A stretch of 64,000 bases of DNA from Mobula hypostoma (GCF_963921235.1 NC_086109.1:12214001-12278000), one strand, 5' to 3'; positions 25,164 through 56,740 are shown, numbered from the stretch's first letter. Notes: generated by a model not told the origin, from the sequence alone. Translations and numbers: made by a program.

Positions 25164-25200
25164 CAGGTAGGAAAACAATCAGAAGAATTGAAGCCCACAT
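25164..25200 (-). CDS. Gene L exon 1: signal peptide (MWASILLIVFLP + phase 1)
   Basis: ATG at 25200, 37 nt, hydrophobic codons, followed by donor G|gtaagt. Joins in frame to the V exon (VSGA|FWAEK). Confidence 0.85.
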
Positions 25201-25260
25201 TGTTTTGTTCGCAGAGACCCAGCCAGGACCTGTCTGTCCTCAGCAAGAATTAACTGTGAA

Positions 25261-28200: not shown

Positions 28201-29222
28201 GTGCTGCAATAGGAGAGGATCCAGAGGAGATTCCTAAGAACAATCCCAGAAAGGGTTAATGTATCAGGAGTGTTTGATGGCTCTGGGCCTGTATTAGCTG
28301 AAGTTTAGAAGAATGGCAGGGAGGGGAGGGTTCTCATTAAAACCGCTGGAGTAGTAAAGGGCCAAGAACCCAGATGGAGTGTAGGGAGAAGATGTTTCCC
28401 ATAATCGGGAAGTCACTGACAGGAGGTTGCTGATATGAGGAATTCATTGTCACAGACATTTGTGGAGGGTCGGGGGCAAGTCATTTGGTACATTGAAAGT
28501 GCAGGTTTATAGGTTTTTGATGAGAAAGGGCTTGTCAAAGTTACAGGGACAATAGGATTGAGGGGGGTAATAAATCAGCCATTGTCGAATGAGGAACAGA
28601 CTCATTGGGCTGAATAGCCTAATTCTCCCTCAATATCTTATGGTCTGAAGTGATTGGGCAATGCAGGGCGAGAGTGGAGCAGTTTGTTTACGTGAGGCAT
28701 ACTTTGGTACTTCCATTTATTCTGTTTTGTAAGACAAGTAAAGAGCACAGAAGTTCTTATGGTACCCTTTGAGAATTGCTTTGGGATTCCCTGGTACAGG
28801 GAAAGTTTCTCTTTCAGAATTAGAATCAGGTTTATTTTCACTGTCTTCTGATGTGAAATTTGTTGCTTTGTAGCGGAAAAAAACAAAGCAAGATCCTTCC
28901 CTCAGAACATTAACGAGCTCAGGTTCAACAGGCCGAGATTCACAAGTGGGATCACTGGTTCTGGAATTATCTGCAGCTAATCAACAGCCATCAGATAACC
29001 CTGAGCTGAAGAGATCAAGAGCTCCAAACAGACTCTGGTGTTACTATTTCACATCCTCACATAGGAAGTGAAGGATATAATGTGATATTCCTCCTTGTGA
29101 ATGGGGCATTTCAAAATTCAAAATTGAAATTAAATTTATTATCAAAATCTATATTTGTCGCCATATACAACCCTGATTTAAATTGCAAAAATGCCGTTCA
29201 CTTTCTCTCATTTTCAAGACGC

Positions 29223-30164
29223 TTTATTGAACTTTCATGGGTCACAGTCACAGATCAGTACGAGAAAAGTTACACCTTCTATTTGCAGATTCACACCCGA
29301 ATGACCGAAGCAAGCTGCAGTAATTTCCAGCTTACTCATTTTATTCAGCAGCCAACTTTTATTTCCAATACTCATTCTCCTTTAAGACCTTTGTACAGTG
29401 ACTGGAAAATTTCATGCTTGTGTCTCTTTCTCACTCCATTTCTACAAAATGCATTGTGCTAGGTCAGTAATCATGCACCTTATCAATGTTCAAAATGTAC
29501 CTGGTACATTTATGATCAGCTACATTAATGTCACCATATCCTCCCCTGAAAGTCATTTCCTTGCAGACATTCACAGTGGGACAATGAAATACAACAGAAT
29601 CAATGAAAAACAATACACAGATATGGATAAACAAACAATGTTTAAAAGAAGACAAACTGTGCAAATACAATAAATAAATAAATATATAACACCGAGAACA
29701 TGAGTTGTAGAATCCTTGAAGGTGAGTCCAGAGGTTGTGTTCAGTGATTGTTTCAGTGTTGGGGTGACTGAATTTATCCACCCTAGTTCTGGAGCCTGAT
29801 GATCCTGAACCTATTGGCACGGGACCTGAGCATCCTGTACCTCCTTCCCATTGGCAGCACTGACAGGAGAGCATGTTTGGATGATGTGGGTCCTCGATGA
29901 TGGATTCTGCTCTCTTGTGGCAGGACTCCTTGTGCTCACTGGTGGGCAGGGCTTTGCCTATCATTTGATCAGATCAGTCTTATCCAAACTCCATACAGAC
30001 CATCCCTGAGTAAAGAATAGGTCTGTTTTTGCAGATACCTATAAGTCAATTTTGCCCATAAATCAGCAAAAACAATGAATATTACTCTATATATTATTCA
30101 TACCCCACATGGTATTATAATGAAAGGCATCAACTGCATTTAAAACTGAGATGAAAGAGTAATT
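29223..30164 (-). pseudogene. Unit 1 orphan tail module, frameshifted: 61-nt exon (30104-30164) + terminal exon from 29441 + AATAAA (29223-29228)
   Basis: NYSFISVLNAVDAFHYNTMW+G is 1 nt longer than its paralogues. The terminal exon carries a further +1 insertion (KWSEKETQA*). Confidence 0.55.
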
Positions 30165-30849
30165 CTGAAAAGTGGAGAGAAAAAAACACTAGTTCTGTTA
30201 TTTGTAGGAACATAGAACCGAGAGCAGTACAGCACAGTACAACTCCATCGGCCCACAGTGTTGTGCTAATCTAATGCCATGATCAGTCTAGTCCTTCCCT
30301 CCTACACAGCACATGATCCTCTATTTTCATACATATATGTGGATGTATATCTAGTAGTCTCGAAATGTCCTTATTGTATCAGCCTCTACCACTGTGCATG
30401 CAGTGTGTTCCAGGAACTCACCACTCTTTGTGTAAAAAACTTACCTCTTACATCTCCCCCTAGACTTTCTTCCACTCACCTTAAATGGATGTCCTCTGGT
30501 ATTGGTCATTGTCACCATGAGAAAGAAGTGCTGCCTGTCCACTCAATCTATGCCTTATACACCTCTTCTACATCACTCTATCAAATTACCTCCCACCCTC
30601 CTATGCTCCAAAGAGAAAATCCTGGCTCACTTAACACTTACTTTTCCTCATAAGATATGTTCTCTGATCAAGGAAGCATCTTGGTGAACCTCCACTGCAC
30701 CCTCTCTAAAGCTTCCACAACCTTCAGACAATGAGGCAATCAGAACTGAACTAACTTCTCCAAGTGTGATTGAACCAGAGTTGTGCAGAGTGTAGCATTA
30801 CCTTGTGCCTCATGAACTCAATACCTCGACTAGTGAAGTCCAGCATGTC

Positions 30850-31415
30850 TGACGAGTCTCATAGAATTTTTTGAGGATGTAACTAACAGAGTGGATAGGG
30901 GAGAACCAGTGGATGTGGCATATTTGGATTTTCAAAAGGCTTTTGATAAGGTTCCACACGGGAGATTAGTGTGCAAACTTAAAGCACACGGTATTGGGGG
31001 TATGGTATTGATGTGGATAGAGAATTGGTTGGCAGACAGGAAGGAAAGAGTGGGAATAAATAGGACCTTTTCAGAATGGCAGGCATTGACTAGTGGGGTA
31101 CCGCAAGGCTCCGTGCTGGGAGCTCAGTTGTTTACAATATATATTAATGACTTAGACGAGGGAATTAAATGCAGTGTCTCCAAGTTTGTGGATGACATGA
31201 AGCTGGGCGGCAGTGTTAGCTGTGAGGAGGATGCTAAGAGGATGCAGGGTGACTTGGATAGGTTAGGTGAGTGGGCAAATTCATGGCAGATGCAATTTAA
31301 TGTGGATAAATGTGAGGTTATCCACTTTGGTGGCAAAAACAGGAAAACAGATTATTATCTGAACGGTGGCCGATTAAGAAAAGGGGAGGTGCAACGAGAC
31401 TTGGGTGTCATTGTA
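30850..31415 (+). mobile_element. Internal RT fragment of the same CR1 family
   Basis: ORF 30891-31469 (YLDFQKAFDKVPH, GVPQGSVLG) closely matches the 12-15 kb element; no 3' tail. Confidence 0.88.
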
Positions 31416-31424
31416 CGCCAGTTA

Positions 31425-31818
31425 TGGAACTGTGCAAAAGTTGTAGGCGTATGTAAAAATATTCTGTAAAGTAGAGATACTATCAAAAATAATGAAATGT
31501 GAAGTTTATAACTATCAAATATTTACTGTAAAGAGCAGTAAATAGTAATAAAAAAATCAAATCAATATTTGGTGTGATGATCCTTTGTCTTTAAAACTGC
31601 AACCATTCTCTTAGGTGCATTATTGTGTAGTTTTATAAGAAAATTGTCTGGTAGGTTGCCACAGTTCTTCTCCAGACTTTGACTGCCACACTTGCTTCTG
31701 ATTCTCCAGGTAATCCCAGACAGCCTCAGTGATGTTGAGATCATGGCTCTGTGGAGGTCATACCATCTGAAACCATATAAAAACTCTTGTGTGTCTAAAA
31801 CCTTTGCACAGTATTGTA
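31425..31818 (+). mobile_element. Second Tc1-like non-autonomous family (partial copies also at ~32105-32355 and ~39840-40100)
   Basis: Inverted termini actgtgcaaaag / ctttgcacagt; internal sequence recurs three times. Confidence 0.65.
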
Positions 31819-34470
31819 CACTGGACTTTTAAATTAAGTAACATTACAGAGGTTTGTTCATATGTCGAACACAAGTCAGGAATTCAAAACCTGGGAATGA
31901 ACTGTATTGTCTTTTATCTTAAATATCACATCTCCCACCAGATCTGCTTTCTACACTGACACTCTTCCACTTTTAACCCAGATTTAAGGAGGGGTCCCTG
32001 ACCTGAAACTGGATTCAATGAAAGGTCCCTGTTATGGTGTGTAGCCCTTCAGTCACGTCTCCATAGAAAGCTTTGGGCTATTGTGCTGGAAGATTGAGTT
32101 TACATACAGTAATCTGCAAAAGTCTTCGGCACATGTAGAATAATTCACTATAATGAAGATGCTTTCAAAAATAATGAAGTGAAAAGTTTTTAAATATAAA
32201 AAACATACTATAAAGAGCAGCAAATAGCAAAAAGCTAAATCAAATCAACATTAAGTGTGACCACACTTTGCCTTTAAAACTGCATCAATACTCTTAGGTA
32301 CACTGTCGTGAGGTTGTATGAGAAAATTGTCTGGTTGGTTGTTCCAAGCATCTCAAGACCATAAGACCATAAGATACAGGAGCAGAAGTAGGCCATTTGG
32401 CCAATCAAGTCTGCTCCACCATTCAATAATGGGCTGATCCAATTCTTCCAATCATGCCCTCTCCCCTGCTTTCACCCCATACCCTTTGATGCCCTGGCTA
32501 ATCAAGAACCTATCTATCTCTGCCTTGAATACACCCAATGACTTGGCCTCCACAGCCACTCGTGGCAACAATTTACACAGATTTACCACCCTCTGACTGA
32601 AGTAATTTCTCCGCATCTCTGTTCTTTACTTGTCTTACCAAACAGAATATAGAGAAGTAACAATGGATGCTACACATTGACCCATTTCTCCAGTCTTTCC
32701 TGCATTGCACCATCAATTCTTGAAAACTTCTCAACAACCATGGTGCAGTATGCCGATGAGAAAAAGTGCAGAGATACAAAACATATTCAGCAAAGCTGTT
32801 TTGTTTCAGCAAATAGATCACTGAACAGCAACAACAATTTGGTGAAGAAAAGTAAAAAGGCCTTTTATGATTGTTTTTAATGCTAATCCCAGTCCTGTGC
32901 ATAACTGTAAATGCAATGGTGGGATATTAAAATATTTTCCATTTGGTTATTGAGATGATATCTAAGAACTGAAGCTTTATAAGGCATTAGTCAGACCACA
33001 CTTGGAATATAGTGAACAATTTTAGGCCTCTTATGTATTAAAGGATGTGCTATAATTGGAGAGGGTCCCAGGAGTGAAAGGGTCAATGTATGAGGAGTGT
33101 TTGATGGTCTGGGCTTGTACTCACTGGCGTTTAGAAGAATGAGGGGAGTTGTCAATAGTGAAGGCCCAAAACCTGGATGGCGTGTATGTGGTTAGGATGT
33201 TCCCTGAAATGTTGGTGTTTCAGAGCAGAGGGCAAAGCCTCAGAATAAAAGACATCCCTTTATAACAAGGGTGAGAAGGAATTAATTTAGCCAGAGGATG
33301 CTGAATCTGTGGAATTCATTGCCACAGACAGCTGTGGAGGCCAAGTCATTGTGTATATTTGAAATGGAGTTTGATAGCTTTTTGATTCGTAAGGGTGTCA
33401 AAAGTTACGAGCTGAATGTGGTTGAAGGTGGTAATAAAATAGCCGTTATAGAATGGCAGAGCAGACTGAATGGACTGAATGGCCTAATACTACTCCTATG
33501 TCATTTTGTTTTACGGTCTTCTGGTCTTATTGGCTTAAGAGATGGAATAATGCAGGAAGAGGCTGGTACAATTTGTTTACATGAGGCATCCATCAGCTCT
33601 TCCCTAAATTCTGTTTCGTAAGAGAAGTAAAAAGAATACAAGTTCCAAGCATCTCCTTTGTAATTTGCTTTGGGATGTTCTTGGAAAGGGACAGGGTACT
33701 TTCAGAATCAGGCTACTTTCATTGTCTTCTGATGTGAAATGTCTTTTTTTGCAGCAGAAAAAACAAAGCAAGTTTGTTCTCTCAGACCATTAAGGAGCTC
33801 AGGATTAACAGGTTGAGATCTGCAAGTCTGACCAGTGCATCTCCAGATAATCAACAGCCTTCAGGTAACACTGGGTATAGACAGAGTGAATGCAAGCAGG
33901 CTTTTTCCACTGAGGCAAGGGGAGAAAAAAACCAGAGGACATGGGTTAAGGGTGAGGGGGGGAAAGTTTAAAGGGAACATTGGGGGGGCTTCTTCACACA
34001 GAGAGTGGTGGGAGTATGGAATAAGCTGCCAGACGAGGTGGTAAATGCAGGTTCTTTGGACAGATACATGGATGGGAGGTGTATGGAGGGATATGGTCCG
34101 TGTGCAGGTCAGTGGGACTGGGCAGAAAATGGTTCGGCACAGCCAAGAAGGACCAAAAGGCCTGTTTCTGTGCTGCAGTTTTTCTATGGTTTCTATGGTT
34201 TCTATGTAACAAACTCCAAACAGAGTCTGGTGTTACTGCTTCACATCCTCACACAGCAGGTGAAGAGGCCATTTAGCCATTGTGTTAAATCCTAATCCCA
34301 ATCCTGTGCATACGTGTAAATACAATGGGGGTATTTTAAAATGTTTTCCTCCCTTATCCTGTCATATTCTTCCTTGTCAGTGAGGCATTTCAAATTTCAA
34401 AGTTCAAATTAAGTTGATTATCAAAGTATGGTACATAAAGTGCAGTTCACTTCTGTCATTTTCAAGACCC

Positions 34471-36286
34471 TTTATTGTACATTCATGGGTTACAGTCACA
34501 GATCAGTACTGAGAAAAGTTACACCTTCTATTTGCAGATTCACACCCTGATGACCAATGCAAGCTGCTATAATTTGCATCTCACTCATTTTAGTCAGCAC
34601 CCAACTTTTATTTCCATAGCTCATTGTCCTTTAAGACCTTTGTACAGTGACTGGAAATGTTCATGCTGTGTCTCTTTCTCATTCCATTTCTGTAAAATGT
34701 GTTATGAAAGGTCAGTGATCATGCACATTATCAAATTTCAAAATATACATGGTAAATTTATTATCAAAGTATGCTAATGTCACCATATCTATCTTCCCCT
34801 GACATTCATTTTCTTGCAGGCATTCATAGTAGGACCAAGAAATACAACAGATTCAATGAAAGAGGACACACAAATATGGATAAACAAATGACGTATAGAG
34901 AAAGACAAACTGTGTGAATACAGTAAATAAATAAATATATGATAGATCATAAGACGATAAGTCAAAGGAGACATTCAGTTCATTGAGTCTGCTCCACCAT
35001 TCCATCATGTCTGATCCCGGATCCCACATCCCACCCAACCCCACACACCTGCCTTCTTGCCAAATCCTTTCATGCCCTGACCAATCAGGAAACTCTCAAC
35101 TTCCACCTTAAATATAACCATGAATTTGCTTCCACCACAGTCTGTGGTAGAGCATTCCACAGATTAACTGCTCTCCGGCGAAAAAAAAATTCTTCCTTAC
35201 GTCTGACCTAAAGGGTCACACCTCAGTTTTGAGGCTGTTCCCTGTACATATGGTTACACCCACCCCATGGGAAATATCCTTTCCTCTTCCACCCTTCGTC
35301 CTTTCAGCATTCAATTGGTTTCTGTGAGATCCCCACACATTCTTCTGAATTCCAGTGAGTACAGGTGCAAAGCGGCCAAACACTTCTCCTCTGTTAACCC
35401 CTTCATTCCCGAAATCATCCTTGTGAACCACCTCTAGACTCTCTCCAATGACAACACATACTTTCTGAGACATGGGACCCAAACTGTTAACAATACCTGA
35501 AGTGTGACCCGACTAAAGGCTCAGCATTATCTCCTTGCTTTTATATTCGAATCCCCTCGATATAAATGTCAACATTGCGTTTTCCTTCTTTACCACAGAC
35601 TCAACCTGTAAATTAACCTTCTGGGAGTCTTGCATACGGACTCCTTAGCCCCTCTGATGTTTGAAACTTCTCCCCATTTAGATAGTAGTTTGCCCTATTG
35701 TTACTTTTCCAAAATGCATTATCATACATTTCCTAACATTGTATTCCACCTGCCATTGTTTTCCCCATTCTTCCAATTTGTCTGAGTCCTGCTGTAATCA
35801 CGTTGCTTCCTCAGCACGACCTTCCCCTCCACCTATCTTCATACCATCCACATACAAAGCCAGCAATTGCATTATCTAAATCATTGATGATAAACAATGT
35901 GAACAGCAGTGGTCCTAATACTGACCCCTGACAAACACCACGAGTCACCGGCAGCCAACCAGAAAAGGCCCCTTTTATTCGCACTTGCTGCCTCCTGCCT
36001 GTCAGCCATTTAGCTATCCATGCCAGCATCTTAACTGTAACGCCACAGGATTTTACCTTGTTAATCAGCCTCATGAGTGGCATCTTAGCAAATGCTCTCT
36101 GAAAATCCAAATAAATGACATCCACTACCTCTCCTTTGTCCACCCTCACAGAAACCTTGTCAGGCAAGATTTTCCTTCACTGAATGGTGGTAAGCACACA
36201 ATTATCACTGAATATGTTATCCATACCTTCACGGTATTGTAATGGTAGGCATCAAGTACATTTAAAACTGGGACAAAAGAGTTATT
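34471..36286 (-). other. Unit 2 orphan tail module: 60-nt exon (36227-36286) + terminal exon (34621-34689) + AATAAA (34471-34476)
   Basis: NNSFVPVLNVLDAYHYNTVK|gtatgg and KWNEKETQHEHFQSLYKGLKGQ*. Confidence 0.58.
35000..36150 (-). mobile_element. Degenerate CR1 RT/3' fragment
   Basis: YLDFQRAF and QGSVLGPLLF remnants (ORF 35811-36167). Confidence 0.8.
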
Positions 36287-36599
36287 CTGAAAAGTGGAGA
36301 GAATGTAAAGCAGTTCTGCTATTTGTAGGAACATAGAACTGTACAGCACAGTTTGGGGCCTTCGGCCCACAATTTTGTGCCAATCTGTACTCCATGATCA
36401 ATCTAATCCTTCCATCCTACAAAGCCTGTAACAGTCTGTTTACATACATAAATGTATGTGCCAATCTAAGAGCCTCTAAATGTCCATACTGTATCAGCCT
36501 CTGCCACCATGCCAGGAGTGCGTCCCACAACTCAGCACACTCTGTCTAAAAAAACTTGCATCTTACATCTCCCCTAGGACATAGGACACTCAAAGCTGC

Positions 36600-37245
36600 T
36601 GCACAGGTTGACTCAGATTAAGAAGGCATATGGTTCATTGGCCATCATCAAACATGGGACTGAGTTGGAGAGCTGAGGGGTAATGTTACAGGACCCTGGT
36701 CAGACCCCACTTGGAGTACTGTGCTCAGTTCTGGTCACCTCACTACAGGAAGGATGTGGAAACTATAGAAAGGGTGCAGAGGAGTTTTACAAGGATGTTG
36801 CCTGGATTGGGGAGCATGCGTTATGAGAATAGTTTGAGTGAACTTGGCCTTTTCTCCTTGGAGCGGCATAGGATGAGAGGTGACCTGACAGAGGTGTATA
36901 AGATGATGAGTGGCATTAATAGTGTGAATTATCAGAGGCTTTTGCCCAGGGCTGAAATAGTTAACATGAGAGGGCACAGTTTGACGGGACTTGGAAATAG
37001 GTACAGAGGAGCTGTCAGGGTAAGTTTTTAACGCAGAGTCCTGAAAGCGTGGAATGGGCTGCCAGCAACGCTGGTGCAGGGAGTTATAATAGGGTCTTCT
37101 AAGAGACTCCTGGATAGGTACATGGAGCTTCGGAAAATAGAGGGCTATGGGTAACTCTCGGTAATTTCTAAAGTACATACATGTTCGGTACAGCATTGTG
37201 GGCAGAAGGGCCTGTATTGTGCTGTAGGTTTTCTATGTTCTATGT
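36600..37245 (+). mobile_element. CR1 3' fragment nested in an older reverse CR1 fragment
   Basis: EYCAQFWSPHYRKDV motif and (ttctatg)n tail. The flanking fragment resumes at ~37246. Confidence 0.8.
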
Positions 37246-40200
37246 CTAAACTTCCCTCCTCTCACCTTAAATGAATGTCCTCTGGTATTGGTTATTGTCA
37301 CCATGAGAAAGAAGTGCTGCCTGTCCACTTAATCTATGCCTTATACACCTCTTCAACATCACTCTACCAAGTTACCTCTCACCCTCCTTTGCTCCAAAGA
37401 GAAAATCACTGGCCCACTCAACATTTACTTTTCCTCGTAAGACATGTTCTCTGATCCAGGCAGCATCTTGGTGAACCTCCTCTGCACCCTCTCTACAGCT
37501 TCCACAACCTTCTAACGATGAGGCAAACAGAACTGAACTAAATTCTCCAAGTGTGATTGAAGCAGAGCTTTACGGAGCTGTAATGTTACCTTGTGGCTCA
37601 CTCTTGTTCTTATGTAGAAGTGTCCACACGTCAGGAATTCTCAACTTGGGAATGAACTCTGCAGTCTTTTATCCTACACGTCACTCCTCCCACCAGATCT
37701 GCATTCTAAACTGACACTCTTCCACTTTGAACCCAGGTCTGAGGAGTGGTCCCTGACCTGAAACTGGGTTCGATGGAAGGTCCCTGTTATGTTTTGTGGC
37801 TCCAAACTGTAAAGAACTTCAACGGAATAAAGGAGAACTAAGAAATGTGAATCTTAGTTTGTATTTTTAATTTAAGTGAAGTGTGCACATATCATGTGGT
37901 AGTTTCCTGAAATATGCAATTCACGTCTTTTATTTATAAACCGTAATGAATTATTGCAACAAACAAGAATGCCTAATCAATATTTACAATATTATTCAAA
38001 TATTACACCGGCCATGCTGCACCTAGTATATATCAACAGTTTCGAGCCCATATCCCAGAAAGGATGTGTTGTCATTGGAGACAGACCAGAGTAGTTTCTC
38101 AAGAATGATTTTGGGAGTGAAGGGGTTAATATATGAGAAGCATTCTGCAAGTTAGACCTGTACTCAATGGAACTTAAAACAATGCATGGGGCTCTCATTG
38201 AAACCGACCGAATGTCGAAGGGACTAGATAGGGTGGATGTGGAGAGGGTGTTTCCTATGGTGGGGTTATCTATAACTGAAGGGCATAACCTCAAAATCGA
38301 GGGTTGTCCTTTTCGAACAGAGGTAAGGAGGAATTCCTTTTACCTAGAGAGTAGTGAATCTGTGGAATTTGCTGCCACGGACAGCAGTGGAGGCCAAGTC
38401 CGTGGGTATATTTAAGGCGGATTTTGAAAGGTTCCTGATCAGTCAAGGCATCAAAGGATATGACAGGAAGGCAGATGTATGGGGTTGAGTGGGATCTGGG
38501 ATCAGCCATGATGGAATGGCAAAGCAGACTCGATGGGCTGAATGGCCTAATTCTGCTCCTATGTCTTATGGACTTATGGTGTTATCTCTTCTTTAGCAGA
38601 GTACCAAATCTGAACACAATACTCCAGGTGTCATGTCACCAATTGTTTTGTACAACTGAAACATCACGTTCCAACTTCTCTATTCTGACTTATGCCTAAA
38701 GTCTTTTTCAATACCCTGTCTACCTCTGACTACACTTTCCAGGAACCATGTACTGTACCTGAATTCAAAGATCCTATCGTTCTTTAACACTTCCTAGGGC
38801 CTGACCAAGCTCCATGAAAGTCTTACTTGATTTGATCTTGGAAATGGAAAACTCAGCACATTTCTGAACTGAACTCTTTTTGCTATTCCATAGCCCAAAT
38901 AGCCAGCTGATCAAGATCCTGTGTAGTTCTTCAAAATTCTGTTTCCTATCTGAAAAGCTACCTGTCTGAGTGTCATCTGCAAATGATATATTTTTTTCAT
39001 TGAACCTTTGGTCAAACCAACAGCTTGTTACATTCTGCTAATTGCTCTAGCAGCAATCTGTGATTCAGTGTTGTCACGTACCCCGTGACGGGTTAAAGAA
39101 CCAGCAGAAATGGAAAACACCTTGGAGTCTGGTATTGCTGTTAACTAACACTATTTTATTAGTAACTACGCAAGTAGCTGCTCCCTTCTCTCTCTGTAGG
39201 AACTCAGAAGCTGGCAGTGTCCTTGCAGAATTCCCAAACAAACTGTGAGCAGTCTTCACCTCTCTCTCAATAACAAGTGGTTTGTGCTGTACAACTGCAC
39301 GCCCTCTCTCTATTTTTTAAAAGCACAGTCCATTATGAATAACTCAGGACAGTGTACATCAGTGAATATCACAGCAAGGGGAAGCAGTATCTTGGGGTTT
39401 GGTAAATACTCAAGCATAACTCATTTCAGAGTATGGGATGAGATTAATGATGGAGCAGTCATGGAGAATACAGCATGACAATCCTTTCAGTGTAGAAAAT
39501 GAATCTAATGTTCTAAGAATAAACATGATAAGAAGAAACTAGGACTTGCTCTTCTTGGAGCATAAGGGGTTAAGAGTGGATATGATTGAGGGGTGTAATA
39601 TTATGAGATGTACAGGTTGGATGGACGACAAGAAACTTTCCCATTCTGAGAGATGATTAGAGGTGACATTGATTGTCAGAGATGACATAGATTTGGAAGG
39701 GATTTGAATGAATTATTTTTACCCAGAGAGTTGTGGAAACAGAGTCAATTCAGTGCTTGTGAGATGCAGAATGACATCTTCAGTCACATCTACATAGAAG
39801 GCTTTGGACCATGTGTGGGAAGATAGGGTTTATATACAGTGCTGTGTAAACGTCTTTAGCACATGTAAAATAATGCTGTAAGATGAAGATGCTTTCAAAA
39901 ATAATGAAAGGAGAAGTTTCTAAATATCAAAAAAATTCTATAAAGAGCAGAAATAGTAAAAAACTAAATAAATTCAATATTGGGTATGACAACACGTTGC
40001 CTTTAAATCTGCATCAATTCTCTTAAGTACACTGTTGAGAAGTGGTACAAGAAAATTTTCTGGTAGTTTGTTCCAAGCATCACAGAGAACTTGCCACAGT
40101 TCTTAATTGGCTTGCTGACATTGCATTTACTTATAAACACTTAATTTCACGTTGTTTAAATGGATAAATGATAAAATAATTCAGTGTACACAGAGAGGTT

Positions 40201-41533
40201 TTGTTACTTTGGGTTCTTTTTACAGTTGTTATAGGAGAAAACAGTGCAATATGTTAGCAGTTAATATTTATCTGCTTAAATTCTGTATATTGTATGCTAT
40301 GAGTGCTGACTGTATTGCATCAGCCACTCCAGTCATCTGTGTAATGTTCAACTTCAGCAAAGGATGTGGTGAGAACTTCAGTCTTCTTTATTTATCTTAC
40401 CAAACAATATAGAGAAGTGCCAATGGATGCTACAGATAACTAAATTGTTCTGGCCACTTTTTGCATTTCCCCATCACTTCTTGGAAAACTTCTCAATAAC
40501 TATGGTTCAATATGCTGATGAGAACAAATGTAGAGATACAGAACATCTTTAGCAAAGCATCTTTGTTTCAGCAACTAGATCACTGACCAACAATAACAAT
40601 TTGGTGAAGAAAAGTGAAATGGCTGTTTTACCCTTGTGTTTAAACCTAATACCAATCGTGTGCACACTTATAAATACAATGGTAGGATTGTAAAACATTT
40701 ACCACTCTGTTGCTGTTAAGTTATCCAAGAACTGCAGCTTTCTAGGTTATTGATCAGACCGCACTTGGAATATGGTGAACAGATTTGGGCCCTTTATCTT
40801 CAAAAGGATGTGTTCTAATTGGAAAGGTGTCCAAAGGAGATTCCAGGGAAAGATCCAGCAATGAAAGGGTTAATGTACGAGGAACGTTTGATGGCTGTTG
40901 ACCTGTACTCACTGGAGTTTAGAAGAATGGTGGAGGTGAGGGTAGGGGTTTTCATTAATTTTCTCGTACAGTGAAGGGCCAAGAACCTAGGTGGAGTGTA
41001 TGTGGAGAGGATGTTTCCCATGGTGGGAGATTTCCTGACCAGAGGGTGCTGATTCTTTGGATTTCATTGTCACAGAAGCTGTGGAGGACAAATCATTGGA
41101 TATATTTAAAGTGGGGTTTGATAGGGTTCTGATTAGTAAGTGTGTCAAAGGTTATGGGGAAAATAGGGTAGAGGGGGGTAATAATTCAGCCATAATAGAA
41201 TGAGGAACAGACTCAATGGGCTGAATGGACTCAAGTTTCAGAGGTCCAGATTCACAAGTGGGTCCACTGCATCTCGAATTACCTCTGGCTCATCAACATC
41301 CATCAGGTAACCCTGAGCTGAAGATGTAATGAGCTCCAAACAGACTCTGGCGTTACTGCTTCACATCCTCACATAACAGCTGAAGGATATCATGTGATAT
41401 TCCTCTTTGTCAGTGAGGCATTTCAAAGTTTAAAATTCAAATTAAATTTATTATTAAACATGTGCATGTCAGCATATACTACCCTGGTTATAATGACAAT
41501 CATGCAGTTCACCTTCTCTCATTTGCAAGACCC

Positions 41534-42545
41534 TTTATTGTACACTCATGGGTTACAGCCACAGATCAGTACTGTACTGAGAAAAGTCACGCCTTCTGTT
41601 TGCAAATTCACACCTTGATGACCGATGCAAGTTGCAATAATTAGCAGCTCACACATATTACTCAGCCGCCAAGTTCATTTCCATTGTTTGTTCTCCTTTA
41701 AGATCTTTGTACAGTGACTGGAAATATTCATGATGTGTCTCTTTCTCACTCCATTTCTACAAGATGTATTTTGAAAGGTCCGTAGTCAAACACCTTTTCA
41801 AATTTCAACGTATATGTGCTAAATTTGTTATCAAAGTCCATTTAGGTCGACATATACAACCCTGAGATTCATTTTCTTACAGTAGGTCAAAGAAATACAA
41901 AAGATCAAATACAATTCACAGTAGATCAAAGAATTATAATAGAATCAATGAAAAATGACACACAAATATGCACAAACAATTTGCAAAGGAAGACACAATG
42001 TGAAAATACAATCAATTAATCAATTGATAAACAAGCAAACAAACAAACAAATAAAGAAATAAATAACACTGAGAATATGAATTGTAGAATCCTTGAAAGT
42101 GAATCCATAGGCTGTGTTCAGTGATTATTTCACTGTTGAGGTGACTGAAGTTATCCACACTGCTTCAACAGCCTAATGGCTGAACTGTTCCTGAACCTGG
42201 TGGTTTGGTATAGTACCTCCTTCCATCGGCAATGGCAAAAAGAGAGTATGTTTGGATGATGGGGGTCATTGATAATGAATGCAGCTTTCTTATGGCATTA
42301 CCCCTCTGTAGGTGTGATTACCGGTGAGCTGGGTTTTATCTATCAATTGATCAGATCAGTCTTAACCAATCTCCATACTGACCATCCCTGAGTAATGAAT
42401 GGCTCTGTTGTTACAGATGTCTATATGTCAATTTTACCCGTATGTCAGAAAACATCACTAATATCACTGAATATGGTATCCATACCTCCATGGTTTTATA
42501 ATGAAAGGCATCAACTGCACATAAAACTGAGAAGAAAGAGTAATT
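41534..42545 (-). other. Unit 3 orphan tail module: 60-nt exon (42486-42545) + terminal exon (41658-41756) + AATAAA (41534-41539)
   Basis: NYSFFSVLCAVDAFHYKTME|gtatgg and KWSEKETHHEYFQSLYKDLKGEQTMEMNLAAE*, with canonical AG/GT sites. Both are open in phase 0. Confidence 0.6.
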
Positions 42546-42989
42546 CTGAAAAGTGGAGAGAAAGAAAACTAGTTCTGTTATTTGTAGGAACATAGAAAAT
42601 AGAAAAGTACTACACAGCTCAGGTCCTTTGGCAGACAATATTGTGTCAATGTATACTCCATGATCAATCTAATCCTTCCATCATACGTAGCCCATGATAC
42701 TCTATTTTTTGTACTTCCATGTGTATGTCTATCCGAGGGGCTCTTTGATGTCCGTTTTGCATCAGCCTCTACCACCATGCCTGCATTGTATTCAAGGGAC
42801 ACCCCACTCACTGTGTAAAGAAAAACTACCTCTTACATCTCCCCTCAATGTACTTCCACTCACCTTAAATCAATGTCCTGTAGGATTGGTCACTGCCACC
42901 ATGAGGAAGAGGTGCTGGTGGCCACTCAATCTATGAGGAAGAGGTGCTGCATCCTGTCTCTATCCTGGGAATGAACTGTGTAGATTTCT

Positions 42990-44911
42990 GTGAGGGACAC
43001 CATCGCCTACGTGCAGGACAGGAGGGTGGACGCCTGCCTGGTCAGCTTGGACCAGGAGAAAGCCTTCGACAGGATATCGCACACGTACATGGCGGACGTG
43101 CTCTCCAAAATGGGATTTGGGGAGGGAATCCGGAATTGGATCAGACTGCTCTACACAGACATCCGTAGTGCGGTCCAGGTTAACGGGTGGGAAACAGACA
43201 GCTTCCCCATCAGGTCTGGAGTCAGGCAGGGCTGTCCCCTCTCCCCTGTCTTGTTTGTCTGCTGCATAGAACCCTTTGCGGAAGCCATCAGGAGGGATGA
43301 GGGCATAAGAGGGGTGACGCTGCCAGGCAGTGGAGGGACCCAAGTGAAAACCTCCCTGTACATGGACGACGTCACCGTCTTCTGCTCTGATCCGAGGTCA
43401 GTTCGCAGGTTGATTGGCACCTGCGAACAGTTCGAGCTAGCGTCGGGGGCCAGGGTCAACCGAACAAAGAGCGAAGCCATGCTCTTCGGCAACTGGCCCG
43501 ACCGATCCAGCGTCCCCTTCACCATCAGGTCTGACCACGTGAAGGTGTTGGGGATCTGGTTCGGAGGGGCGGAGGCGTGCAACAAGAACTGTCAGGAGCG
43601 GACTGCCAAGGTGAAACAGAAACTGGGACTGTGGGGAGGGCGCTCCCTGTCGATAACGGGCAAGAACCTGGTCATCAGGTGTGAGGTGCTCTCAGGGCTG
43701 CTGTACTTGGCGCAGGTCTGGCCCGTCCCCTGCTCCTACAGCTCGGAAATCACCCGGGCTGTCTTCAGATTCGTCTGGGGATCCAAGATGGAGCGGGTGA
43801 GACGGACCGCCATGCACAAGTCCCTGGACAACGGGGGCAAGAACGTCCCCAATGTCGCCCTCACCCTGATGGCCAGCTTCGTATGTGGCTGCATCAGGTT
43901 GTGTGTAGAGCCCAGGTATGTGGGCACCAAGTACCACTATGTGCCCAGGTTCTACTTGTCGCCCTGGCTACGAAGGATGGGTCTGGCCCCACTCCCGCGC
44001 AACGCCCCAGTCAGCTGGTCGTTGCCGGCATACCTGTCCTACGTAGCAAAGTTCTTCCAGGAGAACGCCTTTGACCACAGGGCCATCAGGCAGTGGTCGG
44101 CACGTAGTGTCCTGCAGGCACTTCAGGAGAAGGACGTGATGGACACAGTGGGGTGGTTCCCTGAGCAGTCTGTCCAGTTCATCTGGCAAAATGCCTCATC
44201 GCCAGATCTAACCAACAGGCACCAAGACCTCGCCTGGCTGGCAGTGAGAGGGGCCCTCCCAGTCAGAGCCCTCCTGTACGCCCGGAACGTCGTCTCCGCA
44301 CCCCACTGCCCACGGGAGGACTGCAGTGAGGAGGAGTCTGTGACCCACCTCTTTGCACACTGCCAGTTCGCAAAGAGGGTGTGGAGGAGGATGGACAGGC
44401 TAGTGTCACGGTTTATCCCCAGCAGCTGCGTAACAGAGGACTCTCTGATCTACGGGCTGTTCCCGGGGACACACACGGAGACCAACGTCCGGTGCTGCTG
44501 TCAGATCATCAACTCGGTGAAAGACGCTCTTTGGTCGGCCCGAAACTTGATGATCTACCAGCACATGGAGATGTCCGTGGGAGAATGCTGCCAACTGGCA
44601 CATTCTCGACTGCAGGAGTACGTGCTGAGGGACGCAGTGAAACTCGGTGCAGCCACCGCAAGGGCCCGGTGGGGAAGGACCACAGTATAGGTTACTCCAC
44701 CCGTGGGAGTGGGAGGGGTCGGAGGGCGGGGAGTATACCCCTCAACAATGAAATGATATGGTAAGCTGAACTACTGGAGTGCCACGTGGGTGGCTATAAA
44801 TACGGATATGTACTGTGTATAATGGAAACGTATGTAAAGGATGAAAAGTTATTGAATGGTTTATTGTATATATTTATTTTTGAATAAAGTATATTTTGAA
44901 ATAAAAAAAAA
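42990..44911 (+). mobile_element. Tx1-clade (L1-like) LINE, 5'-truncated, uninterrupted RT + C-terminal Cys/His region
   Basis: 566-aa ORF (SLDQEKAFDR, GVRQGCPLSP, YMDD, CPREDC...HLFAHC), GC-rich relative to its flanks; AATAAA at 44883 and A-tail at 44903-44911. Confidence 0.92.
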
Positions 44912-46044
44912 TCACTCTTCTGACCAGACCTGCTTTCTAAACTGACCCTCTACCACTTTTATTCCAGATCTGAGGAGGAGTCCCTGCCCTGAAACTGGAT
45001 TCAATGATAGGTCTTGGCATATCATAAACTGCTCCTGACGAAGGGTCTCGGCCCAAAAATTTGACTGTTCGTTTCCATGGATGCTGCCCGACCTGCTGAG
45101 TTCCTCCAGCGTGTTGTGTGTGTTGCACAGATACTGCCTGATCTGCTGACTCCTCCAACATTTGTGTGTGTTCCATCAGCATATAGGTGGAAGATAGAAA
45201 ATCTGGCTGAATGGTTTCACAGCTATTTCCCACTCGACATCAGCGAAACCAAGGAGCTGATTATTGACCGCAGGAGGAGTTATCCAGAGGTCCTTGAACC
45301 AGTCCTCATCAGGGCAATATCTGCATCTAATATAAAGTAATCATGCAAATTTCTTTTTAAATCAAGATTTTTTGTAATTATCTTTAATTGAGAAAAAGAT
45401 TGTGTGTATCCACCTAGATTTTTAAAAATCTAGATGCAATATGAGAATGAGAAATATATAAAATGAGCTACCTCTTCATGTCAAAGTTTTTACATTTATT
45501 GAATATGCTGTCAGAGGGAGTGGTTGAGACAGGCGCAATAGCAACATTTAAATGACACTTGGACAGCTCTCTGGACAGGGAAGGTTCAGTGGGATATGGG
45601 CCAAATGCAGGTGAATGTGTCTAGCTTAAATCAACATCTCTCTCAGCATGGTGGATTTGGGATGAAGGGCTTATTTCTGTGTTCTACTGCACTCCACTCC
45701 ATTGTGCATTCGAGTTCCAGTTACAGGTCAGCATTGAGAAAAGTATCTCCAATGATTTGTAGATTCGCCACCTGTGACTTGACCATTGCAACTCACAACA
45801 AGATACAACTCACTCATTTTAGTAGTGCAATCACTCAAGTCGAGTTACATGTTCTCCAAAGGGGTTGTCTATTGGTGGATGTCGAGGCTGATCCAGGCTT
45901 CACATATTCTGGTGCAGTGTGGGCAAGAGTAAGTGGTGGCTATGGTTAGTTGTTGGGTCTTGTGGTTGCTCATTCTCTCCTTTCACAGCTGCAGCTTGTT
46001 CTCTGCAGCACAGTGGAGGTTTACTCACATATACTAGCCCCGAC

Positions 46045-48235: not shown

Positions 48236-48339
48236 AATACATTTTCCTCTTGAACAGATTTCCTCCAAGTGAATCTGTTAAGTGCATTGTCTTCCCAGTT
48301 TTTAGATGTAATCTTGAATTTCTTCTGTGCAATTTAAAA

Positions 48340-49160
48340 TAATTTATAATAAATAGTATGTGCAACAATATAACATAGAAATACTGTTGTGTCAGCATGA
48401 GTTAAACAGACTGATGGCCTGGTGGAAGAAGCTATTCCAGAGACTGTGGTACCATTTCCTGGATGGTAGCAGCTGGAACAGTTTGTAGTTGGGGTGACTC
48501 GGATCCCCAATGATCCTGCAGGCCCCTTTTACACACCTGTCTTTGTAAATGTCCTGAAGAGTGAAAAGTTCACATCTACAGATGCGCTGGGCTGTCCGCG
48601 CCACTCCCTGCAGAGTTCTGCGATTGAAGGAAGTACAGTTCCCATACCAGGCAGTGATGCAGCCAGTCAGGATGCTTTCAGTTGTGCCCCTGTAGAAAGT
48701 TCTTAGCATTTGGAGGCCCATATCAAACTTCTTCAACCGTTTAAGGTGAATGAGGCACTGTTGTGCCTTTTTCACCACACAGCCAGTATAGACAGAGCAC
48801 GTGACATCCTCGGCGATGGTTATGCCGAGGAACTCGAATCAGTTCACCCTCTCAACCCCAGATACGTTGATGTCAATAGGGGCTAGTCTGTCACCATTCC
48901 TCCTGTAGTCCACAACCAGCTCCTTTGTTTTGCAACATTGAGGGATAGGTTGTATTCTTGACACCTCTGTGTCAGGGTGATGACTTCTCCTCTGTAGGCT
49001 GCCTGATTATTATTTGGGATTAGGCCGATCAGTGTAGTCTGATTACTACAGTGAAGGTCTCTGAACTTCTTGTCGAGCCTGGAGGGAATTATGGTGTTAA
49101 ATGTTGAACTGTGGTCCAAGATCAGCATTCTCACATAAGCATCCTTCTTCACCAAGGGTG
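48340..49160 (-). mobile_element. Rex1/Babar degenerate fragment
   Basis: YVRMLILDHSSTFNTI and ESILTGCITAWYGNC remnants. Confidence 0.75.
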
Positions 49161-49509
49161 AAAGCTAAAATGTCTAAGGGGAACATGAGGGTAATCTTCT
49201 TCACTTTGAGGGTCATGAGAATGATCTTCCAGCACAAGTGGTTCATGTGAGTTGGTTTACAATGTTTAAGAGATGTTAGAATAATTGGATTATGGTGGTC
49301 TAAGGTCCCTGTGCAGGTCGATGGGAATAAGAAGTTTAAGTGGTTTCAGCATGGACTAGATGGGCTGAGGAGCCTGTTTCGTGCTGTACATCTCCTTGAT
49401 TCAATAATGAGGTGAAGGCTGGTCGCAAAAATGATGGCAATTAGGGTAGTCGCAATGATACATCTCTATTGATGGCATTTTCCTATATCTGGCAAGCTGT
49501 GAAGATCAT

Positions 49510-51190
49510 GAGGCAGTGCAGAGGAGGTTCACCAGGTTGATTCCAGGGATGAAGGGGTTAACCTTTGAGGAGAGATTCAGTCACGTGGGACTATACTCTC
49601 TGGAGTTCAGAATTTTGAAAGGGATAGATAAGATAGAAGTAGGAAAGTTGTTTCCATTGGGAGGTGAGACTAGAGCTAGGGGACATTACCTCAAAATTCA
49701 GGGGAGAAGATTTATGATGGAGATGAAGAGAAACTGTTTTTCCCAGAGAGTGGTGAAGCTGTGGAATTGTCTGCCCAGGGAAGCAGTTGAGGCTTCCTCA
49801 CTAAATATATTTAAGAGACAGTTAGAGAGGATTTTACATAGTGATGGAATTAAGAGTTACGGGGAAAAGGCAGTTAAATGGAGCTGAGCTTACTGACAGT
49901 TCAGCCATGATCTTATTGAATGGGGGGCGGGGGGCGCACAGGCTGGCCTACTAATGGAATGATCTTAGTGAATGGGGAGGATGGCTTACTCCTGCTCCTA
50001 TTTCTTATGTTCTTATGCTCTTATTTGACAAGCTCCCACATGGGAAGTTCACCAAGAAGGTTCACTTGATTGGCGTTCAAGATGAGGAAGTAAATTGGAT
50101 TGGTCCTTGGCTTTGTGCAAGAAGCCAGAGTGTGGTAGTAGATGGTTGCTTATCTGACTGGAGGTCTGTGAATCATGGAATGGTACAGGTATCGGCGCTG
50201 GGTCATTGATATTTGTCATTTATATTAATATCTGGATGACTGACAGTGTGGTTACCTGGATCAGCAAATTTGCAGATGACACTGAGAATGGAGGTGTAGT
50301 GGACAGCTATGAAGACGATCATGGCTTGCAGTGGGTTATGAACAAAATGGAAACAAGGGCTGAAAGATGGCAGGTGGAATTTAATGCAGACAAGTGAGAG
50401 GTGTTGCACTTCAGTAGGACCAACCAGGGATGGTCTTACACAGTGAATGGTCACGCATTGAGGAGTGCTGTAGAACAAAATAATCTGAGAGTAAAAGTAC
50501 ATAATTCATTGAAAATGACATCACAGGTTGATAGGATCATAAGAAAGCTTTCGGCACATTGGCTATTATAAATTTTTAAAAATCAAAATATCGAGTACAG
50601 GAGATGGGATGGTGTGATGAAGTTGTATAAGAAATGGATAAGGCCTAATTTGGAGCATTGTCTGCAGCTTTGGTCACTTACCTCCAGGAAGGATGTAAAC
50701 AGGGCTAAAAGAGTACAGAGAAAATGTACACAGATGTGGCCGGGTCTGGAGGTCCTGAGTTTTATGGAAAGATTGAAGAGGCTACAACTTCAATTCTTGG
50801 AATGTAGAAAATCGAGAGATTTGATAGAGGTATACAAAATTTTGAGCTCTAAAAATAGGGTAAATGCAAGCACGCTTTTTCCACTGAGGTTGGGTGGGGC
50901 TACAACTGGATGTCATGGGCTAAGGGTGAAAGGTGAAAGGTTTAAGGTTAACATTCGGTGAAACCTATTCACTCAGAGGGCCGTGAGAGTCCGGAATGAG
51001 CTGCAGAGCAAGTGTGCAAGCAGGCTTAATTTCAACATTTAAGAAAAGTTTTGATAAGTTCATGTATGGTTGGGATATGGAGGGCGATGGTGCTGGTGCA
51101 AGTAGATGGGAGTAGGCAATTTAAATGCTTTGGCATGGGCTAGATGGGCTGAAGGGCCTGTTTATGTGCTGGATTTTTCTATGACTATGA
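49510..51190 (+). mobile_element. Two adjacent degenerate CR1 3' fragments (~49510-50005 and ~50020-51190)
   Basis: QRRFTRLIPG, SKFADD and RPNLEHC remnants. Confidence 0.78.
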
Positions 51191-51429
51191 CATGGAGGAC
51201 GGGTCTGCCTACAATCTGTCCAGCTGTCATCTTTGCCAGTCATCACCTTTGTCATATATAGATCATGGCAGTCCCTAGCTCAGAGAGTGACATAATCAAT
51301 GGGATACCACTATTTAGATCAGGCTTGCTGCCAAGATGCCTTGAATTTATTTTTCTGGTGGAAGAAAGTGTTTATGATGAGAAGATTGTGCTCAGCACAT
51401 ATGGTGAGTAGTCAGTCGCACATATAATA

Positions 51430-51528
51430 TTATTCAGTACCCGGCATTACTTTCCATTGGTCAGTGTACGCAAGACCTTTGTACAGTGACAACAATTGTG
51501 CACACAGTGAATAACATTGCAGTATTCT
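51430..51528 (-). CDS. Gene R probable terminal exon (phase 0 reading RILQCYSLCAQLLSLYKGLAYTDQWKVMPGTE*)
   Basis: Acceptor attattacacag. It shares the gtcactgtacaaaggtctt core and its position relative to the acceptor with three downstream copies; minus-strand AATAAA at 51346-51351. The reading frame is ambiguous (see findings). Confidence 0.6.
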   Translation of the reverse strand, partial: RILQCYSLCAQLLSLYKGLAYTDQWKVMPGTE

Positions 51529-51974
51529 CTGTGTAATAATATTCCTAAATACATAAGGAAAATATATGCTTATCAGAAATGAAATCTGGCAATGATGGAA
51601 ATACTCCACAGGTCAGCAGCAACTACAAGGAGAACAACAAAACTAATAATTCAGGTCAACATGTTTCAATAAAATCATTCCATTGGGATGTCTTAATCTG
51701 AAGATTATTTGATTCCCTCTCCAAAAAATTTTCTGCCATTGACACCTTAAGGAAAATTGAGTCCTGTGAATTCATGAGTGAAGTCATATTCTAAACAGAA
51801 TGAATTGATGCATTTTTTTTATTGAAAACAAACTTTATGATGAAGCATTTTCATTAATATATTTATAATTGTTTATTGAACTAACCAACAGTGAAGACAG
51901 TAATTTGAATATAACAGAACAGATTTTAACATGAAAAAGAATCTACCGCTTTCCTGACATATATGACGAATAAA

Positions 51975-52135
51975 CTTTTCTCGTGCTTCAAACGGGTACA
52001 GGTATTGATCATAACCAAAGTTTCGATGACAAACTCTGCCATCTTCTTCAGGGATGATGAAGAAGATGGCAGAGTTTGTCATCGAAATGTTGGTTATAAT
52101 CGATACCTGTACCTGGATGGAAGCCTGAGAAGAGA
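51975..52135. repeat. Long inverted repeat: two Penelope-type hammerhead-like termini joined back to back
   Basis: Perfect 30-bp arms at 52021-52050 and 52058-52087 with a 7-nt loop, extending 26 bp further with 4 mismatches and more loosely beyond. Confidence 0.85.
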
Positions 52136-53257
52136 TGTTAACATTGTAAAAGAATTCTGAGCAGTTCATGATCATAAAAAGGTTAAGGCTAAAGTTAAAT
52201 GTGTTGCAAGTGGATTTCCATTAACCAAAGCCAGTATCTTGAAGCATGACAAGATTATTTTGTTTGATTTCACCTTCATTAAGTCAATGATTTAATGACT
52301 AGAGATTAATTCTGTATAAAAGTTCCACAGGGCTTGAACAGTGACACTTAATCTTGGTGCAAAACTCCCCCACAGTCGGTGTAATCTGGGATCATTCACT
52401 TTATCTCAAGGACGAGGCTGTGAGGATCTGATTGATCAAGTCTCTGTAAAAGCAAAAGTGAAGTTATCAGATTGTTCAACACCGGGAACTATGCAATACT
52501 GTATGATGCTGTGTGCCTGCGATGTTGCACTCAAGTGTTGTGTATGCAACAGGTTGAGCATTGGGAATAAAGTGGTCACTGACTTTGATTTACATTTCAT
52601 GCAGGCACCTCACAACAGAATTCTGTGTGAAGCACAGTGTCCAATATATTTTCTTGTAGAGCACTGGACTTCATTCTACACATGGACAAAGCGTGAAAGC
52701 CTACTTACAGTATATCATCTTCATGGAACTTTAGTTTGACAAAAGGTTAAAAGTTCATATGAGAATGCTTTTTTTTTCCTTCAAATGATCAGCATATTTG
52801 AATGAATTTGCAGTGAAGGAGAATGAGAGGTACAGTAACTCGATAGATATGTACAAGAAGATTGCAGGTAAAAAATTGAATGCACAGCCAGAGACACTTT
52901 CCAAGGCAGAAATGTTTAACATGAGGGGGCATAATTTAAAGAGATTGGAGAAATGCATTGGGGGAATGTCAGAGGCAAGTTCTTTTTACACAGAGAGCTG
53001 TGAATGAGTGGTACCTACTACCAGGGTTGGTGGTGGAGGCAGATACGTTAGCGACATTTAAGAAACTCTTACAAAAATGCATGGATCACAGAAAAGTTGA
53101 AGGCTATATAGGACAGAAAGGTTAGTTTGATCCTCGAGTAGGTTAAGAGGTCAGCACAACATGGTGGGCCAAAGGGCATGTACTGTGTTGTACCATCGGA
53201 TGTTCTATGCTCCAATTCATGGAAACCTTTTGGGAGCATCTACTAACCTAGGCTTAC

Positions 53258-53348
53258 CTTTTTGTCTCTCCTGAACCATGTGACAGCGATGGTCCAGATC
53301 CCCAGCAGAGCAAAGAACAGCCAGCGCCCCACTTTCCATATCATGTAA
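53258..53348 (-). CDS. Gene R transmembrane exon with basic residues (YMIWKVGRWLFFALLGIWTIAVTWFRRDKK)
   Basis: 91 nt, phase 2/0 (same length and phases as the gene L TM exon), acceptor ccactttgttcag, donor AAG|gtaagc. Confidence 0.85.
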
Positions 53349-55645: not shown

Positions 55646-55721
55646 ATTTTATCTGATGATGATTCTTTCCTTTGTGCAGTTGTAGTTTCTTTCACGGTAT
55701 TTTCACAGAAATGGATTGGCC
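55646..55721 (-). CDS. Gene R stalk exon (GPIHFCENTVKETTTAQRKESSSDK)
   Basis: 76 nt, phase 1/2, acceptor ttcttttaacag, donor AT|gtaaag. Homologous to 9230-9302. Confidence 0.82.
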
Positions 55722-56544: not shown

Positions 56545-56740
56545 TGGTTGTTGTTGCTCTCCGTGCCTGAGGCACATCAGGCAGCAACTTTACTGTTTGG
56601 TCAGCATTTGTCTACTTCTTACGAAGACCAGTTTTTAACTCGACACTCAACCTCGCATAGATGGAAAGCGTGCTGGGAGCCGGACGGATTTGAACCTCGG
56701 ACCGTTCGCCAGTGCTGATGTCACTACATCACCGGTCGGC
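56545..56740 (-). mobile_element. Second tRNA-derived SINE with (CAA)n tail, nested in a SINE
   Basis: Minus strand shows an A-box-like tgatgtagtg, B box ggttcaaatcc and a 3' caacaacaac. The host SINE continues on both sides. Confidence 0.6.

Follow-up and report, generated by a model that had tools for sequence, protein, structure and literature searches.

What is to be made of several copies of a receptor's tail exon that lie downstream of an activating-type receptor gene? The question is posed by 64,000 nt of the Mobula hypostoma genome (GCF_963921235.1 NC_086109.1:12214001-12278000), a transposon-rich stretch, hereafter the window, in which positions are counted from the first letter and all relevant genes and exon-like blocks lie on the minus strand. 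It holds the activating-type gene R, its inhibitory paralogue P and an array of units, U1 to U4. An initial annotation found three homologues of R's own last exon (51528) at 41756 (U3), 34689 (U2) and 29441 (U1), each with an AG acceptor and its own AATAAA, and took them for orphan cytoplasmic-tail modules; it proposed either that one ectodomain is given alternative tyrosine-motif tails or that the modules are 3′ relics of deleted paralogues. Direct reading and a script, with which all coordinates were checked, located everything in that annotation (blocks, splice dinucleotides, core, phases and AATAAA signals) and bore out the three homologues, while a mini-exon of R and a fourth relic had been overlooked (Table 1).

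The answer that we hold to be somewhat better than an even bet is that the array consists of tandem, stranded long-tail terminal modules, partly dead, and that the main product of R would be short-tailed. In copy number, the last exon stands three to five times behind R, head-to-tail. The preference for stranded modules follows from the block order shared by the units, the stop codon in R's mini-exon, the lack of Ig, transmembrane (TM) and leader exons, the indels of U1, the U4 relic and a premature TGA.

The long-tail exon and the 3′ end of gene R

In the receptor family to which R is related, the activating type has a TM segment with a (V/M)GRW motif that ends in ..TR..K and is followed by a short exon, R.D.SDPH..LV..K; in the family plan this mini-exon has 13–15 codons, and the TM exon ends in phase 0. 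The majority of activating-type proteins end directly after the short exon (P0032 and P0152–P0155; P-numbers denote family proteins), and P0003 and P0026 extend a few residues past it. Two M. hypostoma RefSeq models, XP_062921369.1 (P0007) and P0151, both computed gene models that were seen as proteins, run on into EGREKETRHEHFQSQYRGLKGEQGMEIKAGC. This is the family's long-tail last exon, EKET.HE.FQS.Y.GLKGE, with an S-x-Y-x-x-L that resembles an immunoreceptor tyrosine-based inhibitory motif (ITIM). P0007 reaches it from the TM exon by way of the mini-exon and P0151 from the TM exon directly, and inclusion of the mini-exon is what distinguishes the two tail isoforms.

The last exons of the units are recognizably of this kind. 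The P0007-type tail finds them by tblastn at E values of 7e-11 (U2), 6e-8 (U1) and 1e-7 (U3); U2 is 75% identical to the P0007 tail over 28 amino acids, and the likeness extends beyond the stop codon of U2 (..AMEIKVGC* vs ..GMEIKAGC*). Homology is accompanied by a phase-0 AG acceptor, a stop codon and a poly(A) signal, the frame of U1 being broken, and the ITIM consensus (S/I/V/L)-x-Y-x-x-(I/V/L) fits SLYKDL in U3, SLYKGL in U2 and R, and SQYRGL in P0007. The initial identification as orphan cytoplasmic-tail modules is thereby upheld, because P0007 and P0151 have a homologous terminal exon; judged by its sequence, the unit last exon belongs among the family's genuine coding exons, as an optional terminal one. 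The constant distance of the core TCACTGTACAAAG (SLYK) from the acceptor, also part of the initial description, holds for R, U3 and U2 (39 nt), and in U1 it is 40 nt because of a 1-nt insertion. P0007 and P0151 share with R the GRW-type TM and the homologous last exon (EGREKETRHEHFQSQYRGLKGEQGMEIKAGC), but they represent another locus (67% TM identity and about 70–75% last-exon identity) and are without the 60-nt block described below.

Homology with P0003 validates the 3′ exons of R as well as their phases. The codon split between the stalk and TM exons (AT|T) gives Ile, in agreement with the 'YKIYMIW' of P0003, and the TM exon matches P0026 of Hemitrygon akajei in 29 of 30 residues. The stop codon of the overlooked mini-exon coincides with the protein ends of P0032 and P0152–P0155, and an ATTAAA lies 3′ of it at 52296–52291. 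Given the TGA, the ATTAAA and the end shared with P0032, R's main product most likely ends in the mini-exon, short-tailed as P0032 is. The mini-exon has a single GT at its end (AA|GTGAAT), in phase 2, so that the tyrosine motif of a last exon farther downstream would be readable only with the mini-exon skipped. The initial claim that U3 and U2 could be spliced in frame to the phase-0 TM donor is correct as far as the phases go (U1 is out of frame), but it holds only if this mini-exon, with its TGA, is left out.

R's own exon at 51528 is, as the alignment presents it, the most decayed copy of the last exon. Its homology to the units, claimed without qualification at first, is confined to 65 nt (51490–51427; 74–77% identity by blastn), and, compared with the units, it has lost 1 nt after SLYKGL.

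Architecture and origin of the array

The units are 75–87% identical over 0.4–1.7 kb (blastn), far beyond chance, and have a common order. On the minus strand, 5′ to 3′, they comprise a repeat E, the 3′ part of a CR1-type long interspersed nuclear element (LINE), about 50 nt, the 60-nt block, an intron with the 3′ end of a second retrotransposon, about 80 nt, the last exon with its 3′ untranslated region (UTR) and AATAAA, a second tail of the same retrotransposon, and then blocks C, B and A. The C-terminus of open reading frame (ORF) 2 of CR1 is visible in the translations of the units, and the CR1 tail ends in ..ttctatgttc. Block A of U2 directly abuts block E of U1 (32047/32045), and at the remaining unit junctions only unit-specific transposon insertions lie between the shared blocks. 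As the initial annotation had stated, the units hold no signal peptide, Ig or TM exon: tblastn with R's V, C2 and TM exons, the paralogue's V and C2 exons and 12 family C-termini found no Ig, leader or TM exon at 25.3–51.3 kb, and a hydrophobicity scan, run over the array in case a TM exon was hidden there, picked up T-rich transposon tails only.

These shared borders, together with a single architecture that leaves no room for Ig or TM exons, strongly indicate that an already-orphan 3′ module was copied in tandem. In the scenario that we propose, an ancestral segment of about 5 kb, which would have held only the last exon, its 3′ UTR and poly(A) signal, the 60-nt block and two older transposon tails, was copied at least four times downstream of R by unequal crossing-over. 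The resulting copies would represent the 3′ module that gives an activating-type family member its optional long tail, left stranded, with R ending in its mini-exon; U2 and U3 would still be splice-competent, their joining in frame would need the mini-exon skip, and such use would probably be minor. Kimura two-parameter (K2P) distances in the flanks are 0.22 between U1 and U2 and 0.27 between each of these and U3, so the array is old and U3 split off first. The U4 relic is flanked on both sides by LINE fragments with reverse transcriptase (RT) ORFs. An extra copy of block A lies at 31430–31658, between blocks E and D of U1 and beside a young CR1 piece, and hints at the last trace of a fifth unit. 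Two same-orientation tails of one retrotransposon family (..gataataaatttaatttgaa..) bracket the last exon about 350 nt apart (41413–41470 and 41790–41870); homologous bracketing tails occur in U1 and U2, and both tails are older than the unit duplication.

The 60-nt block (61 nt in U1) was initially described as a conserved exon that precedes each last exon. Its positions, strong pyrimidine tract and gtatg donor were confirmed, and every copy has an AG acceptor; the donor is fair (GAG|gtatgg) and the acceptor very good. Its coding status found no support, the block being absent from all 150 best family proteins. When the tail peptides were compared with the 150 best family representatives, P0007 alone matched, and in the last exon alone. 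A junction peptide of TM end, 60-nt block and last exon had no candidate in 5.8 billion proteins, which is weak evidence because the search sees only proteins of 35–112 amino acids, and no R-like TM/tail was present among proteins of 183–581 amino acids that share 5-residue words with a related TM/tail query.

Attempts to place the block elsewhere in the family plan were rejected. As a homologue of R's mini-exon it reaches best local scores of 17–22, equalled by 20–177 of 300 shuffles, and as a homologue of the family TM exon its scores fall inside the shuffle range. The 'DAFHC' tblastn matches at 9470–9502 and near 56040, considered as further copies of the block, are about 17 nt inside a transposon tail and were set down to chance. 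The end of the U3 block (42486–42500, minus strand) has a perfect Kozak context, aaaACCATGGag|gt, whose ATG is kept in U1 and is GTG in U2; this context is probably a chance occurrence.

Conservation, decay and competing readings

Several observations weigh against the view that the modules are simply stranded. In the first 63 nt of the last exon (to ..KGLKG) three-way identity is 58/63, compared with 368/529 elsewhere (binomial 1.7e-5; Fisher 2e-5 vs intron and 0.007 vs UTR), and K2P is 0.05–0.07, about four times lower than the 0.22–0.27 of the flanks. This conserved stretch has its edge at the acceptor. Around the acceptor of the 60-nt block identity is 81%, vs 60% upstream (p 0.003), the block itself being at 75%, and the AG, GT and AATAAA signals are kept in all three units. 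Such conservation suggests constraint after duplication, unlike what plain neutral relics would display, and the conserved 63 nt and acceptor region, together with the surviving signals, make purely neutral decay a disfavoured explanation.

The nature of the substitutions qualifies this picture. By hand count, all six substitutions in the 63 nt are nonsynonymous (S/N, H/Q, Y/H/I, D/G) and none is silent, where about five silent changes are expected at the flank rate; the 60-nt block has about 10 nonsynonymous vs 2 synonymous changes. Plain purifying selection at the protein level does not leave such a pattern. Gene conversion in short tracts, with expressed family exons as donors, would account for it equally well, and the cluster clearly converts (see the 99% stretch of R and P below); constraint on exon-definition sequences would fit as well. 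Decay is also apparent: U1 has two frame-breaking indels, one in its 61-nt block and the 1-nt insertion in its last exon, and U1 and U2 have in common a TGA that precedes the family stop by nine codons and is premature relative to P0007 and U3. U1, with its indels, and U4, shattered by LINEs, are to all appearances dead.

A tail-swapping cassette, in which U3 and U2 would serve R as alternative terminal exons with the mini-exon skipped as in P0151, is possible but in our judgement rather unlikely. The arrangement would permit it: the units lie downstream of R in the same orientation, and U2 and U3 are phase-0 compatible with the TM donor and have intact acceptors, donors and AATAAA signals. 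The roughly fourfold lower divergence of the coding 63 nt, with edges sharp at the acceptor, also speaks for it, as does the annotation of both TM-to-last (P0151) and TM-to-mini-to-last (P0007) splicing in a paralogue. However, such splicing must pass at least two poly(A) sites and 10–18 kb of LINE-rich DNA, and the proximal copy, R's own, is the one that has decayed most; U1 and U4 appear dead, and the membrane-proximal V exon of R is incomplete. Conservation is equal at silent and replacement sites, and with no synonymous change among the six, short gene conversion or constraint at the nucleotide level is a better fit than protein selection. That no database protein has these exons counts only weakly against the cassette, since only short proteins were covered. 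We give slightly less credence still to an array of working, interchangeable terminal exons that would provide one Arg-TM receptor with or without an ITIM-like tail.

The other reading offered initially, that the units are the 3′ ends of complete paralogues whose Ig and TM exons were lost by separate deletions, is probably not the origin of the array, and we consider it improbable. Clusters of this kind usually undergo birth-and-death turnover, a past within complete genes would account for the conserved coding part, and the block A fragment at 31430–31658 hints at more lost copies. Yet upstream of the 60-nt block every unit has the same order of CR1 part and block E, abutting block A of the previous unit, with nothing but unit-specific transposon insertions between those blocks; identical borders of this kind are not expected from independent deletions, and the shared architecture lacks space for Ig or TM exons. 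We attach very little probability to the idea, which the initial annotation had itself raised, that the blocks are a dispersed repeat or are carried by a transposon, for example by 3′ transduction, and are not gene exons. Each exon-like block does lie 50–80 nt downstream of a retrotransposon 3′ end, and a second tail of the same element follows past the poly(A) signal. However, other copies of the tail (11170–11642, 59059–59529, 58399–58438 and 20011–20051) stop short of any exon-like sequence, RefSeq receptors have the last exon as coding sequence, and no copies of the blocks occur outside the array and gene R within the 64 kb. A tandem row of stranded long-tail modules behind a short-tailed R is the reading that we carry forward.

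Table 1. Features of the R–array–P locus, in window positions
Feature	Position	Strand	Basis and remarks
R C2-type Ig exon	59807..60127	-	Reading, Pfam Ig_2/Ig_3; phase 1 to 1; 86% identical to Mobula birostris P0003
R stalk exon, (G)PIHFCENTVKETTTAQRKESSSDK	55646..55721	-	tblastn with P0003/P0012, boundaries read; phase 1 to 2
R TM exon, YMIWKVGRWLFFALLGIWTIAVTWFRRDKK	53258..53348	-	Arg in GRW motif; phase 2 to 0; donor AAG|gtaagc
R mini-exon, RLDQSDPHSLVLEIK (52443-52399), and TGA	52396..52443	-	tblastn with P0003/P0026/P0032; reading
R's own diverged long-tail last exon, ..SLYKGL..	51346..51528	-	AG acceptor; AATAAA 51351-51346
U4 relic, 3′ UTR part only (123 nt)	45701..45823	-	blastn 71% over 125 nt, E 1e-11; AATAAA lost
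Whole array	27097..45013	-	blastn block maps
U3	~39778-45013	-	blastn block maps
LINE RT ORF inside upstream part of U3	42984..44687	+	Pfam RVT_1 E 2e-25, zf-RVT
U3 60-nt exon-like block, NYSFFSVLCAVDAFHYKTME, ..HYKTME	42486..42545	-	~50 nt downstream of CR1 3′ end
U3 last exon, KWSEKETHHEYFQSLYKDLKGEQTMEMNLAAE	41534..41756	-	Stop 41660-41658, 3′ UTR, AATAAA 41539-41534
Insertion of about 2 kb at unit junction	37801-39777		
U2	~32047-37800	-	blastn block maps
U2 60-nt exon-like block, NNSFVPVLNVLDAYHYNTVK, ..HYNTVK	36227..36286	-	Reading and script
U2 last exon, KWNEKETQHEHFQSLYKGLKGQ	34471..34689	-	TGA nine codons before family stop, 3′ UTR, AATAAA 34476-34471
U1	~27097-32045	-	blastn block maps
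Young CR1 piece	30844-31429		93% identical to 12680-13265
U1 61-nt block, ..HYNTMW	30104..30164	-	Reading and script; one extra base, frame broken
U1 last exon, KWSEKETQA*	29223..29441	-	1-nt insertion, SLYKGL core out of frame; AATAAA 29228-29223
P leader exon, downstream bound of array	25165..25236	-	tblastn with P0014 residues 95-118, 75% identical
P uncharged TM	8524-8441	-	tblastn
P tail, VYADL/VYASM	1947-1693	-	tblastn

The receptor family and known systems

R and P form a charged and an uncharged member of one family. The V exon of P (22853–23248) contains a V-set domain (Pfam, E 4e-13), and that of R is homologous but truncated; R's C2 exon gives weak, sub-threshold Pfam matches to Ig_2 and Ig_3 (E 1.5e-4 and 8.5e-4). 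In a phmmer search of 1.84 billion representatives, the C2 exon of R matched 81 proteins at E<=1e-10, with up to six C2 stretches per protein. The first 47 or so of these matches are receptors of repeated V + C2 modules, V-C2-V-C2 sequences being seen among them, and the matches looked up by name belong to sharks, skates, an electric ray, stingrays and Mobula. The proteins nearest to the window genes in protein searches are from Mobula and stingrays; none of the first 47 phmmer representatives and none of P0151–P0155 is encoded by the window, and Rfam gave no match over the window as a whole. The inhibitory type of the family has an uncharged TM and a long ITIM tail, and P and R provide the two paired forms, R with a charged TM and a short tail. 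A CD300/pIgR-like V-set domain, modular V/C2-type Ig repeats and paired forms are all found here, and membership of R and P in the elasmobranch V + C2 (MDIR/CD300-pIgR-like) receptor family would match the published picture.

Further features of R and P concern their 5′ parts. The membrane-proximal V exon of R (62179–61970) breaks off after ..RDTTYQG, with the F/G strands and the second Cys missing, and R's other 5′ exons are outside the window. P's copy of this truncated V exon (17096–17287, minus strand) is shorter by another 65 nt, and a GT at 61965 in the V exon of R (61923–62179; AAAAA|GTGAAT) would, if used as a donor, preserve phase 1. R and P are 99% identical over 17107–19108 / 61999–64000, down to 76% further 3′; across the duplicated segments (9018–19108 vs 55408–64000) identity is 99% at the 5′ end, then 96%, 92%, 80% and 76% toward 3′. 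Such a gradient suggests that the ectodomain exons of an activating/inhibitory pair recently underwent gene conversion. The intron between R's mini-exon and its 51528 exon holds a near-perfect inverted repeat of about 120 nt (52000–52125), a hairpin like that of a miniature inverted-repeat transposable element, in which ORFs of both strands give the same peptide (..MTNSAIFF..EEDGRVCHRN..). The RefSeq models P0014 (H. akajei) and P0018 translate the homologue of 53253–53348, in the TM exon region, in another frame (LHDME.GAL..L.SAG.L..), which yields a non-membrane peptide; this is either a mis-annotation or a real soluble or frame-shifted isoform.

The MDIRs of the clearnose skate are described as CD300/pIgR-like multigene families with activating and inhibitory members, in the accessible part of the publication (PMC3031540). 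The link to them is drawn from that description and from skate RefSeq relatives, and the comparison is one by description. As described there, skate MDIRs resemble the present genes in combining CD300/pIgR-like V-set domains modularly with other Ig domains, and in forming a multigene cluster whose members have charged TMs or ITIM tails (PMC3031540). Unlike the locus studied here, the accessible part of that description contains neither an optional S-x-Y-x-x-L last exon nor tandem arrays of such an exon (PMC3031540).

The locus offers a DNA view of the remodelling of paired-receptor tails in cartilaginous fish, with an early end in the mini-exon and a tyrosine-motif exon multiplied as an orphan. 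Partial-gene duplicates and optional tyrosine-motif exons are already known from paired-receptor clusters; what is unusual is the multiplication of an orphan module, a terminal exon together with its poly(A) signal, and the good preservation of its coding core. If the copies are unused, they are a dated example of birth-and-death debris and a warning to annotators that splice-competent, ORF-bearing exons can persist outside genes at a flank divergence of 0.2–0.3 substitutions/site.

In human KIR2DL4 and NKp44, a charged TM residue is combined with a cytoplasmic ITIM. An R product with a spliced unit would similarly join the TM Arg to S-x-Y-x-x-L, but KIR2DL4 and NKp44 each have their tail as a constant part of one gene, not as one of a set of duplicated terminal exons, and these receptors are unrelated in sequence. 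Inclusion of 3′ exons decides the presence of tyrosine motifs in CEACAM1-L/S, Fc gamma RIIB1/B2 and PECAM-1; these are single-copy cassette exons within one gene, whereas here a terminal exon and its poly(A) site are multiplied, and their use is putative. If the copies are used, one ectodomain could have two signalling modes, which would bear on the origin of activating/inhibitory pairs. In a working cassette, tail choice would be tuned by duplicating a terminal exon and its poly(A) site in tandem, and the locus would be an elasmobranch counterpart of the KIR2DL4 and NKp44 dual receptors.

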